Shown here: piece by piece, positions 4,481 to 52,177 of the stretch | Position numbering within the stretch: the first letter of the stretch is position 1 | Layout of the letters: the number at the start of each line of letters is the position of its first letter | Assembly: GCA_020536535.1 (NCBI GenBank) | Contig: JAHLWZ010000601.1 | Coordinates: 1 to 64,000 of the forward strand | Reading direction: 5' to 3' | Length of the DNA stretch: 64,000 bases | Source: Pelomyxa schiedti | Lineage: Eukaryota; Protista; Evosea | Program-made: the position numbers and the translations under genes | The notes under the pieces: generated by a model | Seen by the model: the letters and a program-made list of their open reading frames with translations, nothing else | What the model was told of the DNA's origin: nothing | Databases searched by the model: none

Positions 4481-5214
4481 GCGTTTCGAATTTTTTTGAT
4501 TGCCTTTTTTTCGGTTTTGACCGAGAGTCATTGAGTTGACCGCTTGCCACCAATTCTGGGTCAGACTATTGCCTTCAAACGCAGTAAAATACAGCCCCCA
4601 TTGGTGCAGTGTCAGTTGGGGCCCGTTGAGAGACGTACAGCCACGCTGCACTGTCCCTCGAAAAAAGTACAACCACTACGCAAGGTAAACATACCCGTTG
4701 TNNNNNNNNNNNNNNNNNNNNNNNNNNNNNNNNNNNNNNNNNNNNNNNNNNNNNNNNNNNNNNNNNNNNNNNNNNNNNNNNNNNNNNNNNNNNNNNNNNN
4801 NGCAGTAAAATACAGCCCCCATTGGTGCAGTGTCAGTTGGGGCCCGTTGAGAGACGTACAGCCACGCTGCACTGTCCCTCGAAAAAAGTACAACCACTAC
4901 GCAAGGTAAACATACCCGTTGTGGAGTTTGGTCGATGTGGGAGAGCAGGAGCTCCCGCTTTTTATCTGGTTGATTGATTGGCTCAACCTTTTTACCTGAT
5001 CTACCTGCAGCACACCTGTAACTATGTTTCCCACCGATTGCCCAGGGCATATCCAATCTCTGTAACATTGTGAGGACTTTTCACGCAAACAGGGACGTTG
5101 GGGTAACTGATTACCAACAAAACCAATGGCTCATCACCACAGGGTCTGGATAGGATAATTTAATTAGCCAAAGTTGGTTTTGAATGCAATCAAAAAAAAA
5201 GTCTTGAGGGCAAG

Positions 5215-6777
5215 ATGGTGAGTTATTACGACGAATACGACGAAGATGTGTTTGATGAGACCAGGGAAGAAGTCGATGATGTGCAGAAAGTGGTGGACGA
5301 GGCTAAAAGTACCCCTCGTTTATCTTTGGAAGTGCCACAGTGTTGGCTGTGCGATGCCCCTAGATTCCGAGTTCAGTGTAAACTTACAGCGCCTATTCTA
5401 CACCTCGATAAGACAATTGTAGAGGGCTCTTGGACAATGAATAGAAAGACAAAGAGACGGCAGGTGAAGATTTCAGTCTTGTCTCAGCTTTGTCCCGATG
5501 GAGACCCACAACCACTTGTTCGAAAGGCCTTCCTGGTTCTTTCAACAACACAAGCCAGGTTAGTGTGCAGATGTGTGTCTCTCAAGAAAGTCTTGGAAGG
5601 GATCACACAAGCTTTCACCAACTCCACAGAAGTAACATGCATCAGTGAGTTCTTCAGAAGGATTGGCGACCTGAAAATTGAAGTTTCCCTGGATGCTGCC
5701 ATTAACTTTGGTTGTAAACCTGCAGTGCAACTAAACCTGCTGCATATCACTGTAGGAAGAATCTTGATGTTTAGGCTGACTACTACAGTTCACCAAGTCC
5801 AAAACGAGAGTGGGGTGTGCAAAGCACATACCCAAATACAGGGGGACGGCCATCCTTCCCATCCTGCACTCGTTGGCACGAAAACAAAGTACAAACTACC
5901 ATCACCACAAACCACAAGGTACTTTGAAGCCAAAATTGAGGTTGCATGGCCCCAGCTCCTGGGCGTTTTGGAGGATTATGGACAAGAGGTTGTCGCAGCC
6001 ACTTTGAGAAGGATAGGAAGCATTCCTATCTTAAAACTCCAAGATAGTACTTTCAGGATTGAGCTTTCTCTCAGAGTGGGTGGTTCAGACTCAAAATTTT
6101 CATTGAACCATTTTTTTGTTGAAGTTTGCAATGTAGAAGTATTTGGAGTACCCTTGAGCTTGCAAGCTGCATTCACTGGTGGAGATGAAAGCACTTCAAA
6201 GCGGCTATTTCTGACACTCAAACACCCACCTGAACTACCAATAACAAGCCTTCATGACATGATTTCAGAGGCCGCCAAAGATCTTTCCATCAGTGATCTG
6301 GATACAAAGCTCCCCAGGCCAGTCAGGACAATACTGCAGAAAATTTTCCTGAAGAACTATCAATTGGCTGTATGTCTAGCAACAGATTCCACATATAGCT
6401 TTGTGTTTTCCATTGTGGCTTCTGTCAAAATTTCCTCTGGTTCAACTGAATGCACTGCAACTGTTGCTCACTTATGCAAATGGACACTCCTTGAAGTCAA
6501 CTTTGAACCAGGTCTCTCCCTGGCCACCATTCTGTACAGCCTCTTGTCAGGCACCCCTCAGCAGGACCTTGAACATGAGAAAGTGGAGGGGGATGGACCT
6601 GCTGGCTTTGATTTAGCTCTAAACAAGTTTGAGTGTTGTTTTGGACCAGGACTTGGTGGACTGCCCACTCAACTGACAAATGACTTTCCTCTTTTCACAC
6701 AACCTTCCTTCAGCACTGAGAGTTGTGCAACAACCACCACTGCTTCAATATCTGAACACTCACACAATTCGTCATGA
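5215..6777 (+). CDS. Uncharacterised beta-rich protein with acidic N-terminus (paralogue A1)
   Basis: Intronless 520-aa ORF; shares LEVPQCWLCD..R, AFLVLSTT.ARLVC, F.LNHF.VEV..V.VFGVPLSLQAAF and GFDL.L.KFE blocks with ORFs at 15764-17923 and 43682-47044. Confidence 0.8.
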   Translation: MVSYYDEYDEDVFDETREEVDDVQKVVDEAKSTPRLSLEVPQCWLCDAPRFRVQCKLTAPILHLDKTIVEGSWTMNRKTKRRQVKISVLSQLCPDGDPQPLVRKAFLVLSTTQARLVCRCVSLKKVLEGITQAFTNSTEVTCISEFFRRIGDLKIEVSLDAAINFGCKPAVQLNLLHITVGRILMFRLTTTVHQVQNESGVCKAHTQIQGDGHPSHPALVGTKTKYKLPSPQTTRYFEAKIEVAWPQLLGVLEDYGQEVVAATLRRIGSIPILKLQDSTFRIELSLRVGGSDSKFSLNHFFVEVCNVEVFGVPLSLQAAFTGGDESTSKRLFLTLKHPPELPITSLHDMISEAAKDLSISDLDTKLPRPVRTILQKIFLKNYQLAVCLATDSTYSFVFSIVASVKISSGSTECTATVAHLCKWTLLEVNFEPGLSLATILYSLLSGTPQQDLEHEKVEGDGPAGFDLALNKFECCFGPGLGGLPTQLTNDFPLFTQPSFSTESCATTTTASISEHSHNSS

Positions 6778-7158
6778 ATCCATGTTTGGGGGTCAAACTA
6801 AGTGTGCCAAAAAACGTATCAAAATTCGTTTTCGTGTTGTCCCAATCTCAACCTCCAGGCAACCAGGGGGATCAGTAACTTGAAGTTGTTGTCAAAGTTC
6901 CCCCCATTTACAGCTGAGACTGTTTCAAAATACACTTAATACCTCCTAAGGCCCTGCTTGCCCGTGGTTGTGTTGATGGGTGTTGTTGAGCATTGCCCAA
7001 GGAGCCCTGTTGGTGTGCGCAGAACCCTGCTGTTCACGAAAAAAATCCACTTTTCCCTAACGGTGAAATTGTGCTATCCAACTCACAAAGAGATTGAAGG
7101 GAGATTTTTTCTCTTTTTCTTAGAATTAAAAAGCAGGGTTGCGAAGTACGAGGAGAAC

Positions 7159-11216: not shown

Positions 11217-12345
11217 ACCTGGACACAGGAGCTCCAATCTTCAATTTATACTGTCAGGCTACAGGAGCTGCTCTGAACTACAAGAATACAGAAGTCCTGG
11301 CAGCCCACCCCCCACAGGCTAAAGATAACATCAACTGTGTGGCCAGTACAGACAGTAACAAAGTACAAATACCTTGGCATCCTTAGTGGCCACATCTCCG
11401 CTCTAGAAAGAATTGAACCAATGATCAACAAGACCCAGTGAAGGGCTCAAGACATTATACCCAAAGTCCTTGGCCACCAACATTTACATCCACTCAATCC
11501 TTCAATACCAATGCCGTTTTGAAATTTTCTCTCCAAGTCAAGTCTGGCATCCATACATGACCAAAAATTTACACTTCCTCACTCCATCCAACTGCACATC
11601 ACTGGAACACTTGACGGCCCTCACGAAACAAGGAGGCTTGGCAACACCCCTGCTGGATACACAGTGGTGGAATGTTGCAGTGGCCATCTCAGGATATCAG
11701 AACCCCAACCAGCATAATCCTCTCATCAAAGATGACACAACCCGGGTCTGGGAGATAGAAACTCTGAATAAGCATCTCCCATGGCACCTATCTTCTCCCA
11801 CAGACATCTATCGGAGCATATGCAAAAAGCACCCAATTAAGCCTTTGCACCATGACTACAACACCGTCAGCAACCACTGGCAAGACTTAATAAGGGACCT
11901 CCACACCCCAGGCATCCCCCACTCAACCTGGGACCAAGCCCTCTGGGTTGCAACCAACATGAAACCGCCTAACAATCGCATGGCCCATGTATGCAAAGTC
12001 GCTCCGACTTGCAGGCATGGATGTGATTCACCGGAGACAGTAAAACACATCCTTAACAGGTGCCAACATAATTCGGAACTCCGGCAAGAACTGAAACTGA
12101 ACCCAATGAAGACCCTCAACATAATTCCCAACTCCCCAGACTCAGCCAAATCTGCAGCCAAAACCATCATAGGGCTATATAATTTCCACACCTCAACACT
12201 CCCGGGGGAACTAGCGCGTGTGGAAGTCTGTGGGGCACTGGGTTTACCAACCCAGGCCAAATTCCAAACAACCACCATCATTCACCCAAGATTTGAATAC
12301 AATCCACCTTAAAGGCTTCATGCAGGAAGTAAATTTAATAAATGC
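11217..12345 (+). mobile_element. Non-LTR retrotransposon (LINE) 3' fragment, degenerate
   Basis: ORF 11470-12312 contains the zf-RVT-type motif PTCRHGCDSPETVKHILNRC and a GGLATP motif; stops upstream; AT-rich tail after the stop. Confidence 0.7.
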
Positions 12346-47044: not shown

Positions 47045-47711
47045 TTCTCTTTCCCTTCGCTACGAGACAGTTTCTCGTTTTAAAAAACGAACGAAACGTA
47101 ATGGAGATAAAAAGCTTACTGTTATTGACGGCTACTACTTTGGGTCGAGCGACGCTAAGAATAACAGTTCTAAATAATGCCAAGTTGGGGAAAGCTAAAC
47201 GGCGCTGACAGCTAAGGTGCGGACGAATATTCGATGTTCGAATACATTCGATTTTTTTTGACTATTCGACGAATAACCTATTATGAGTGTGATGTCTAGT
47301 GGGAGGACACCCGTTTTTTGTGACAACCGCGTCGGCTGTTCCCTACCATTGTGCATCTCAACTTGGCACCCAGGCCAACCCCACCAATAACCCCCAGAAA
47401 AAGGGCTCGCAACAACAAAGGGTCCCAAGTTTCATCTCAATCACAAAGTACCAAACGCCGTCGTGGAGGTTCGCCTTTGGCTTCTACACCCAGACCTTGT
47501 CTCCCATCCGTACAAACTTTAACACCTCCTCCTCCACTTTTTGCTACGTTGAGGCCACCCTCAGCATTACACCTGCCATTGCGGTCACCTATTTCACTTA
47601 GAGAGGGTGGANNNNNNNNNNNNNNNNNNNNNNNNNNNNNNNNNNNNNNNNNNNNNNNNNNNNNNNNNNNNNNNNNNNNNNNNNNNNNNNNNNNNNNNNN
47701 NNNNNNNNNNN

Positions 47712-48418: not shown

Positions 48419-51400
48419 ATGAATCCTGATCAGCAGGCGTTCGTCGAACGCCTCTGTACCCCCGAGCGCTTGAGTACCTTGGTACTGCCGACCCCCCCCG
48501 GCGTGAACTTCATCTGCGAACAAGAGAGTAAAATGGTATGGCAACGACAAAACAATGGTCGGTTGACATAGCGCAGACTCCATTGCATTGTGCCACAATT
48601 CTTGGTTACACAAGCACAGTCAAGTGGCTGCTAGAGAACAAAGCCGATGTGAATCTGACAGTAATGCTTTCTGTTGTCTTTTACCTTCTTACACCTGAAC
48701 CCCCTCCAAACTCCACAATGAATGTAGATGGTACTCGCAGAATTCAACTTACATCACCAGTCCCTACTAACACTAACCGCAGACTGTATGAAACATCTTT
48801 TTATTGTTGGCTAAACTTATATTACTTTTTTGTTCCAAAACTTGTCCCTTCGTAGAAAAATCTGGTAAGAAAGAAACTTCCCACAGCGAACCTCATTATA
48901 CAATAGAATAATAAGGTACAAGTCATAGACTACTTTACAACAACTTGACAAGGCAAAACTCTTAAAACACAAAAAGTGGGTATGATATGTGCCACAGCCA
49001 CCTCCCCCCCTCTTTTTGAAGGAAACAAACCACACAATACATGATGGTGACTGATAATTACTATTTTATTGAAATCCTCATGGGTGGCAGATGGTATGTA
49101 ACCTCAAAAACATAGTCATAACCTTTTTTTAATACATAAATCAGAAAGTGTGTCGTTCCTCTACAACCAACTCCATTGCTGACTCCCTTTTTTTGCTTTG
49201 TTGCATTGGATGACATAATAGCTTGTATATCACCCAATAGAACTTTTTATATATAGCTTTATTGCCCAAAAACACATCTTTTCTATCTTAACAAATATGT
49301 ATACAGATGGTACACACACCAGCATCACCATGAATTTGTTAAACCTCTTTTCCCTCCCATCAAACCCAAATATTTTTTCACAGAATGTATGCTGCACTTT
49401 CTGTTTTTCCAACCTAACACCCACAAATATGTGACCAAAAAACCAATAGGAAGTATGTGAAATGAAACTTGCATATTTTTAGCTGCTATACTCACCTTAT
49501 TCTTTCCCATTGGTTGCATGGTCACATTTTAGCTTGTATGGAATCAATACTAATTGGCTTCAACTTATCCTCATACATCACAATACACTTTTCTAACAGA
49601 ATGTGTGTACTCTGCTTTAACCCACTGTAAAACTCTTGTTTTTCCCTTACCCATCACAAAATAGATCGTATGTGATCACATAAACTGACTCAGACTAATA
49701 CCGTTTTCATGGATACTTTTCCCACTGGAATATGGTACCATAGGATGTATGTGCAAGGCAAATAGAAGTAATAATTATATTTATGTTCTCTCCAGGATGT
49801 ATGTTGTCAGCTGACCAGATTTTTAATTTTTCATATTCCTTCTCTCACCATATCCTTTACTGGGTGGCACATGCACACAGAAGGTATGGAACCAGTTTTA
49901 TTTTTGGAGCCTTTCATTTAAACATTTTCTCTGTGTTTTTTCTTCTTGCTATGATACACAAGACAGTATGTGGCCATCTCTCAATTTCTTTTTTCTCATT
50001 GTATGCAAATGAACCATTTGATGTCCTCACACTAGCTTGTATGTTTAGTTGATACAAACTACTTGCTCACTTTAAACTACAAACTCAATTAAATACCTTC
50101 TTTACATGTAGGATGTATGTACCAAGATGTGCAATCACTATTTTCTTTTCCTCTTTCTTCCTCCATCAAACAAAAATGTAATATAACTCTGTGTTTACCT
50201 CTTCTTCCCACTGAACACAATAGCTTGTATGTGATCTGCCTCCCCATCATTTTTCATTTTTGATCACACATTTTTCACTTGACACATGGCTCCATAATCA
50301 AAGATCGTATGCCATTTCAATCAACTGTTTATTTTCATTTTTCTTCTTTCAGGATGGCTGTTCGATTGTATGTTGTATTCAAAGTTTTATTTTTTACTTG
50401 ACTATTCACTTCTTTATGGAACAAATCAGGAACTTGTAAGTTGTGCTGTAGTGTTTTTTTCTCCCTCATTCCCAAATAATAAAAAAAGACCACACTGAAC
50501 ATTGCATGCATTTTGAGGCACAAAGGAATTATGGAACTCCTACTCAGCCAATGTTCTGTACAAATTGATGTGTGTCACTACATTAGTTTCTTCTTTGGGT
50601 TTCATATTAAAACAGGATGATACCCTTGCTCTTTGCCAGGACGATTCCATAAAACAGCTGTTGAAGCGCAAACAGGTTGATATTAGCAGAAGTCTTGATC
50701 AGTGTAGTTCTGATGACTTTTTGTGCAGGTCTCAGACGGGTCTCGAACACAAACACAGCCGCAAGCAGTGGCGCAAAGTCCAACGGCTATAACAGTAAGT
50801 CTGGCTATTGGCCTCAGTTCTGAACTTTACCCAGGTAGCTCCAGCAGTTGGCAAGATGGCAATAGCACCAGAATTGCAGGGTCTAACAGGACAAGTTACA
50901 GCCAGCAAGGAAATCGGAAGTACGGATGTATCAAAGGTTCGCATCAACAGAACCAATATGGACCAGCTGCAGGAATGGCTGGGGCTTGACTGTATTGGCA
51001 CAGAGACATCTCTCAACTCAAGATTTATCTCCACAGAGATTTTTGGTGCATAGCAACAGTATATCTGTTTCCAGCCCAATAATAATTGGCAGGAATAAGT
51101 ACCCTCAGTGTATCAGGGTACCGTTGTGGTGCATTGATCATTGGTGATGCTGAACCTCAGGAGCACAATAAGATAGCAACCTTTGCTAATGTGAAATTTG
51201 CCCCCTTTTTCGACTCTGCTCATCTCATTTAGTTTCTTCATGCTGTCTGTTCCTTTGATGTCACGTGGAACACAAACCCAAACACATTTACAGAGAAATT
51301 AGGGATCTTTTCCAGTCCAATTTCCTCCCAAGCGCCGTCTTCTTCTAGATCAGTGGCTCCACAAGGGAGCAAAGTACAGTTTTGTACAATTGTTTCACAA

Positions 51401-52066
51401 CCCTCAATGGCAAACATAGATTGCAAAGCTTCTGTACTTTGCTGGAAACACCAAGCAGGTGGGATCCCAATTGTGTTTGATGCCGGGTGACGCTCCACCC
51501 ACATCATACACCTCAGATAACTGCATCCCCCTCTCGACGATTGTTACCCAGCTTGCCAGCGACTCGGTCCTGCCCATTGTTATCATTGACGCCTACCGGC
51601 GTGGGGATGTGTGCCATGTTTTTGCACCCTGGCCCACTGTTTTTCTCAGACTTAACTAATAGGAGAATGAATCTGGCAACGAAAGTGAACCTGTGCAACT
51701 TGTAGAACAATTGGGCTTGCATACAGTGGCCACATCGTGCGGGATTTATGTTGTTTGCTGTGTGAGTCCTCAAGGTATGAGAATGTGGCCCTCTTGCCTC
51801 TGACACATGCGCAATCTTACAGACCGTGATGGACGACAAACAACAATGAAGAAACTTTTCACCACACGCCTTCTTGAAGGTGCTTTTCTCGTTACACGAA
51901 CTTTTCCTTACTCTCGACAGGTATGAAGGGTGCCAGGGATTCTGGAATAACAGGGACACCCTTTGATGATTTTGTTGGGCAAGCCAGTGAAGCTGTGCAG
52001 TACGACTCCAATGGAACCATCTGCCCTGTGATCTTTGATTCTACAGAGCCATTTGCCCTTTTCTGA
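48419..52066 (+). CDS. Ankyrin-repeat protein with a micro-exon-encoded loop and a C-terminal inactive caspase-like (C14) domain; one apparent +1 frame discontinuity at about 50981-50984
   Basis: Ankyrin exons 48577-48660 (TPLHCATILGYTSTVKWLLENKADVNLT) and 50489-50569 (TTLNIACILRHKGIMELLLSQCSVQID). C14-like exons RCGALIIG, IAKLLYFAGNTKQVGSQLCLMPGD, PIVIIDAYRRG, GIYVVCCVSPQ, LFTTRLLEG, TGTPFDDFVGQASEAVQYDSNGTICPVIFDSTEPFALF*. Confidence 0.75.
48661..50488 (+). other. Array of 24 phase-0 micro-exons (twenty of 3 nt, one of 6 nt, two of 9 nt, one of 15 nt) separated by 42-111-nt GT-AG introns
   Basis: Recurrent (T/C/A)AG|NNN|GT units, most often with donor GTATG, every 50-85 nt or so, usually preceded by a pyrimidine-rich tract; all lengths are multiples of 3 and none encodes a stop. 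Confidence 0.8.
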
Positions 52067-52177
52067 AAAACCAGTGCCTAAGTGGCTGAATAAAATAATC
52101 GAACGCAACTGGTGTTTATTTTATTATTGTACCAAGTGAGGAGAATGCATAAAGTAAACAATTCAGTTTTCCTCCAC

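Follow-up and report, generated by a model that had tools for sequence, protein, structure and literature searches.

Between two ankyrin exons of a Pelomyxa schiedti gene lies a stretch of DNA that raises two questions: whether it is an intron or a chain of codon-sized exons and, if the latter, whether these exons are chosen among or joined one after another. The gene, GenBank Pelo_7634, lies in the 64,000-nt stretch analysed here (the window; Table 1). The GenBank model reads through the array introns and includes 0 of the 3-nt exons; Pelo_7634 is mis-annotated in the array region. An initial annotation had instead proposed 24 micro-exons, from which splicing would retain about five codons in varying combinations.

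Table 1. Features of Pelo_7634 and its micro-exon array, in window positions.
Feature	Position	Strand	Content or evidence
Probable first coding exon, 39 codons, uncertain	48419-48535	+	sequence only; no RNA contig
Ankyrin exon, 28 codons, from T of TPLH	48577-48660	+	Pfam Ank, E 1e-7
Micro-exon array	48661-50488	+	25 introns, 24 phase-0 units, located from sequence
Units 1-3 (48728-30, 48783-85, 48856-64)	48728-48864	+	consecutive in one RNA contig
9-nt unit	48907-48915	+	predicted from sequence; bypassed in sole RNA seen
Predicted intron, 60-nt exon in RNA	48916-48975	+	in-frame TGA, all three frames closed
TGG unit	48977-48979	+	predicted from sequence; bypassed via donor at 48976 in sole RNA seen
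Eleven single-codon units (49091, 49145, 49222, 49307, 49384, 49450, 49533, 49600, 49665, 49744, 49796)	49091-49798	+	
Predicted RNA hairpin	49429-49527	+	z -4.1; masks unit 49450 and acceptor region of 49533
Four single-codon units (49881, 49963, 50036, 50112)	49881-50114	+	RNA
Predicted RNA structure	50172-50275	+	z -3.6; masks acceptor and unit at 50224
Last four units (50224, 50304, 15 nt at 50353, 6 nt at 50430)	50224-50435	+	RNA
Degenerate ankyrin exon, 27 codons, from T of TTLN	50489-50569	+	RNA
Capping helix and linker exons	50616-50675, 50729-50794, 50835-51045	+	cDNA mapping
Caspase-like domain (C14, MALT1-like), six exons	51093-52066	+	Atlas C14 score 0.96, cDNA
AATAAA and poly(A) site	52089-52108	+	poly(A) tail on RNA contig L074

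The array and the gene that carries it

Checked against the sequence, all 24 proposed units (twenty of 3 nt, two of 9 nt, one of 15 nt and one of 6 nt) are where they had been predicted, bounded by AG and GT, in phase 0, a multiple of three in length and stop-free; with every unit used they sum to 33 of the about 486 codons of the coding sequence. The excess over other spacings, named beforehand as a check, was equally clear, with 23 AG-N3-GT sites between 48661 and 50488 against 2.8 +/- 1.6 expected (maximum 9) from 2000 dinucleotide shuffles, and three AG-N2-GT and no AG-N4-GT sites in the same interval. The donors are mostly GTATG or GTGTG. The claim that array spacing matches intron sizes elsewhere in the window needs correction for this gene: the array introns measure 42-111 nt (median 70), whereas its downstream introns confirmed by RNA measure 40-54 nt (median 46, n=9; p 0.0003). 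Remnants that resemble units but have no proper AG lie at about 49041 and 50180, within the longest two introns of the array (111 and 109 nt). An AT-rich 18-nt inverted repeat (48817-48834 and 50169-50186; 17/18 paired, above 60 shuffles) could, by pairing, place most of the array in a loop. An amphipathic helix encoded by the 33 codons was considered and rejected, the hydrophobic moment not exceeding that of unit-order shuffles (p 0.07-0.5).

The flanking exons do begin at the T of TPLH and TTLN, as had been noted, and the upstream one is a 28-codon exon matching Pfam Ank above the cut-off; the 33-residue repeat with its TPLH motif is thus recognisable there, while the next repeat is degenerate. 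A Pfam search of this second exon (50489-50569) returned no match, and it occupies the position of the TALH/TPLH exon of the paralogs. Upstream, GenBank places the start of Pelo_7634 at an ATG just before exon 2, instead of in the exon that we list as the probable first. A 100-base assembly gap (47612-47711) lies just upstream of the neighbouring gene.

Downstream of the array, RNA contigs L074 and L075 define ten exons, the stop codon at 52064-52066 and polyadenylation near 52108, and the 387-codon downstream frame is open. The tail has the motif order of MALT1 and paracaspases of the C14 family and aligns weakly to MALT1 around both catalytic motifs (E 0.23). The His-Cys dyad of active C14 caspases and paracaspases is absent, the catalytic His being replaced by Asn (codon 51447) and the catalytic Cys by Tyr (codon 51594), so the domain is probably a non-proteolytic scaffold. 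The product is apparently cytosolic and multidomain. Database searches found no ortholog of Pelo_7634 outside the P. schiedti genome; within it, three further caspase-like loci are related to its tail (C900:25773-26126, C900:51516-51716 and C807:10647-11273).

Serial splicing of single codons

The RNA evidence for the array consists of five contigs assembled from one single-cell sample sequenced in two runs, representing about 2-4 molecules and maybe as few as two, with rare variants dropped in assembly. In these contigs 22 of the 24 units appear as exon sequence, the exceptions being 48907 and 48977. One contig joins the last 22 nt of the exon ending at 48660 to units 1-3, continues with 48916-48975 and then reads ten consecutive codons from 49091, the first ten of the eleven units of that block. 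A second holds anchored joins from 49386 to 49450 and from 49535 to 49796, with the three expected codons in between, and a third an anchored join from 49883 to 50112 with both middle codons present. In both runs, the main polyadenylated contig carries the last four units in order, spliced to 50489. The array units are therefore true spliced micro-exons, and the RNA gives evidence that some twenty exons of 3 nt can be spliced one after another, which is unreported in this lineage and concerns a region where the public gene models are wrong.

The two bypassed units were lost together in one molecule. The last AG of unit 48907-48915 served as acceptor, and both alternative sites are canonical; the outcome is a stop-containing isoform. 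We rejected the resulting 60-nt piece as a coding exon, since all its frames are closed and TGA ends the reading frame of Pelo_7634 itself.

How far do these data constrain skipping? Among skippable units, 19 were included in genomic order and two bypassed (about 2-4 molecules, one sample). Were each unit included with a probability of 50%, 19 inclusions would have a chance of 2e-6, and at 20% one of 5e-14, which excludes for this gene the proposed outcome of about five retained codons. Likewise, free combinatorial skipping finds no support here: the anchored joins over single-codon units are all-in. A direct join of 48660 to 50489, named in advance as the result that would speak against micro-exons, was looked for and not seen among the array RNA contigs. 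The lower bound on per-unit inclusion is 0.70-0.85, and the RNA is compatible with 85-90% inclusion, in which case many transcripts would lack a few residues; low-level skipping may thus occur in the window's array.

The comparison with Dscam also fails. Dscam1 carries tandem duplicated cassettes in a recognition domain, with RNA structure near the splice sites, and one whole-domain exon is picked per cluster; in Pelo_7634, in contrast, many single codons are joined serially, at least ten consecutive units in one RNA contig, and on present evidence there is no mutually exclusive choice.

Four introns are retained across the contigs. One of them (49453-49532) is retained in one RNA contig, and the main contig begins at 50213, inside intron 50115-50223. 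The two masking structures of Table 1, with z-scores relative to shuffles and windows chosen after a scan, are possible control elements, a suggestion that rests on a correlation with retained introns in two cases. None of the contigs is a complete productive mRNA (one carries the stop, the others retained introns), and none covers the 5' exons.

A family of arrays with diversified codons

A genome pattern search for three consecutive 3-nt units, in short-gap and long-gap versions, gave 24 and 154 matches, against 1-5 in the short-gap controls (N2, N4 and reversed) and 1 in the long-gap reversed control; the recurrence of AG-NNN-GT arrays across the genome, another check named beforehand, is therefore borne out. 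The family comprises about 30 loci, of which about 28 match a young subfamily and some may be alleles; C687, C689, C695, C706, C1194, C1223 and C1936 are known from match rows only, as are C900 and C807 with the caspase-like loci. In at least 13 genes read, Pelo_7634 included, the array lies between ankyrin repeats 2 and 3, which upholds the proposed placement of the units at the ankyrin hairpin. Both ankyrin flanks were read in nine of the 13, the upstream flank being a 28-codon ankyrin exon. Unit chains of the paralogs, computed without a frame constraint, are nearly all multiples of three; one call of 2 nt in C176 and one of 8 nt in C247 probably reflect errors in chaining. The paralogs end in a coiled coil, two SAM domains and a U-box, or elsewhere in a kinase-like region assigned by motif only. 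Between the ankyrin exons of the paralogs and that of Pelo_7634, only 9-12 of 28 positions are identical, which makes Pelo_7634 a distant member of the family.

A standard ankyrin repeat has five residues in the hairpin loop. The loops encoded here with all units used are 9-28 aa long in the paralogs and about 30-33 aa in Pelo_7634, and the conserved opening units (I, G-x-P) and closing units (G, T/I, E, GD) already exceed five codons. Many arrays close with a 6-nt Gly-Asp unit ahead of TALH (23 matches versus 0 in the control), which restores the usual hairpin; the window's array likewise ends in a 6-nt unit. Across 181 units one is a stop, and the commonest residues are Gly, Ile, Leu, Tyr, Asp and Phe. 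An AlphaFold model (P0007) was too poor to use (pLDDT 39). No RNA was found for the young arrays, nor any RNA-derived proteins for the young paralogs.

Young arrays consist of tandem copies of about 100 nt, with a median intron identity of 87% in C219. Across 22 near-identical unit pairs (introns about 4% apart), which are non-independent and were picked for intron similarity, codon positions 1, 2 and 3 differ by 32%, 27% and 5%; positions 1-2 thus diverge about seven times faster than introns. Since position 3 tracks the introns, this pattern points to diversifying selection on the residue encoded by the paralog micro-exons. The comparison applies to young arrays, the window's introns being too diverged. 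Indeed, we found no tandem repeats within the window's array, and its introns have lost mutual similarity, for which the best explanation is an old family member with diverged introns. Of the claim that the loop is made hypervariable residue by residue, the diversifying signature in paralog codons stands, whereas its construction by skipping is not supported for this gene.

Arrays were also seen outside ankyrins. In L066 (G000:C247, minus strand, about 5040-6890) and L072 (C1571), each of two tandem repeats rich in Cys and His (CRWH...WSCC) contains one, with a similar unit order in both copies. A further array of ~11 single-codon units with a Gly-Asp-type 6-nt end (L035-L037, G000:C163:66600-67600) has no ankyrin exon on either side within the DNA examined.

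Explanations and precedents

We consider it rather probable that the array encodes a frame-safe, germline-diversified loop, probably for binding, that is spliced serially with most or all codons kept. Because recognition of a short intron takes place across the intron itself, a very small exon is no necessary obstacle to splicing, and failures should mostly take the form of retention, as was observed; short intron-defined units removed individually would yield a productive mRNA with most or all codons. Ankyrin repeats 2 and 3 would then be connected by a hairpin extended into a long inserted loop. Since every unit of intron and codon is in phase 0, copying, losing or recoding one in the genome would leave the frame intact, and such gain, loss and recoding across about 30 ankyrin sensor genes would diversify the loop in the germline. 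As the ankyrin hairpin is part of the binding groove, these genes may encode sensors that combine a variable binding loop with a signalling tail, a pseudo-caspase in Pelo_7634 and SAM-SAM-U-box or kinase-like in paralogs. The in-order splicing, gene structure, family layout and codon-over-intron divergence are observed; ligand binding through the loop and a nonself-sensing role are inferred from architecture and selection, and duplication is presumed to proceed by unequal crossing-over. The design offers a route to evolving a protein loop residue by residue without frameshifts. Pelomyxa is an amoeba with obligate prokaryotic symbionts, and the array genes are candidates for its discrimination among microbes.

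Against this model, the strict 3n symmetry is equally expected from selection for skippability, and the closest precedent, the truffle nank family, is reported as alternatively spliced. It is possible, if rather unlikely, that units are skipped stochastically so that each cell makes many loop variants, with a precedent in the alternatively spliced Tuber genes (PMC4986451, PMC13449251); 5-15% skipping per unit here, and perhaps more in young arrays, is the plausible form. This would fit units that are all 3n and phase 0, the two bypassed in one molecule, a per-unit inclusion possibly as low as its lower bound, predicted hairpins over acceptors, and young arrays with introns of about 100 nt and GTGTGT donors. 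The GenBank model of Pelo_4155 uses just 9-nt and 6-nt units, which would also fit, though predictors miss 3-nt exons. A TGA codon in the young C219 array (unit near 12205, minus strand; L046) would be tolerable in a skippable unit; it may equally be a null allele or an error. Yet the anchored joins are all-in, the sole bypass gave a premature stop and no in-frame variant, and the errors seen are intron retention. A broader claim, likewise possible but rather unlikely, would make the family a CDR3-like repertoire independent of fungi, in which dozens of ankyrin sensors with caspase-like, ubiquitin-ligase and kinase tails combine germline diversification (positive selection on duplicated single-codon exons) with codon-level skipping per cell for immune or symbiont recognition.

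We regard as improbable a third reading, in which the array mainly throttles expression or the copy is decaying, with little full-length protein. Twenty-five introns, hairpins and weak donors could leave most transcripts unfinished or stop-containing, in line with the four retained introns, the intronic start of the main polyadenylated contig, the poison-like 60-nt exon and the 5' exons without a contig, and the decayed-looking units in the two long introns and the degenerate second ankyrin exon would suit a failing copy. However, every listed donor and acceptor is intact, the units contain no stop codon, the frame beyond them stays open and between-run DNA variants within the array are all intronic; moreover, thin sampling cannot establish absence. 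That the array is mere coincidence in AT-rich intronic sequence, or a product of misassembly, is suggested by nothing except the small size of the motif; this reading has a negligible probability and is ruled out by the 23 sites against 2.8 expected, the two DNA runs that span the array and the codons joined in RNA.

The array design has a precedent, previously known only from truffle. The nank NACHT-ankyrin NLR family of Tuber melanosporum is described as carrying tens of codon-sized exons (Iotti 2012, PMID 22289772; as cited in PMC4986451, PMC3689799, PMC13449251) that are extensively alternatively spliced, with a role in nonself recognition proposed (PMC4986451, PMC3689799, PMC13449251). 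By that description, nank and Pelo_7634 are alike as expanded ankyrin-receptor families with tens of codon-sized exons, and expanded, rapidly diversifying paralogs are found in Pelomyxa too (about 28 young-subfamily loci). Pelo_7634 is nank-like in design but not a nank member, because NACHT is absent: downstream of the array its transcript encodes a linker and the caspase-like domain only. The Pelomyxa family further differs in being amoebozoan, in having three to four ankyrin repeats with pseudo-caspase, SAM/U-box or kinase-like tails, and perhaps in splicing, the few RNA molecules of Pelo_7634 showing mainly serial inclusion and nank being described as alternatively spliced. Codon-exon receptor arrays thus have precedent, and the Pelomyxa case differs in lineage and tails and perhaps in splicing.

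The micro-exon genes (MEGs) of Schistosoma mansoni, a fast-evolving family, also have runs of 10-20 short, mostly 3n exons, mostly of 15 nt with introns of 0.1-5 kb and making up the bulk of a secreted protein (bioRxiv 10.1101/2023.06.21.545858); Pelo_7634, in contrast, has mostly 3-nt exons and 42-111 nt introns, and they build one loop only. Literature searches returned no report linking Pelomyxa or Mastigamoeba with micro-exons and none of codon-exon arrays in Amoebozoa.

A pattern scan of soil metagenomes returned twelve contigs of the same design (L076, L083, L087, L094, L096, L100, L105, L122, L138, L141, L146 and L154), with 9-53 units at a period of about 71 nt, often a CTRAY branch motif, and the same codon-over-intron divergence. 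They look fungal, and if they are, Tuber would be only one of many fungi with such arrays. In L141 and L154 the arrays lie behind NACHT-type NTPase frames, and together with the truffle precedent these NACHT-linked soil arrays suggest recurrence of the design on receptor-like genes in distant eukaryotes.
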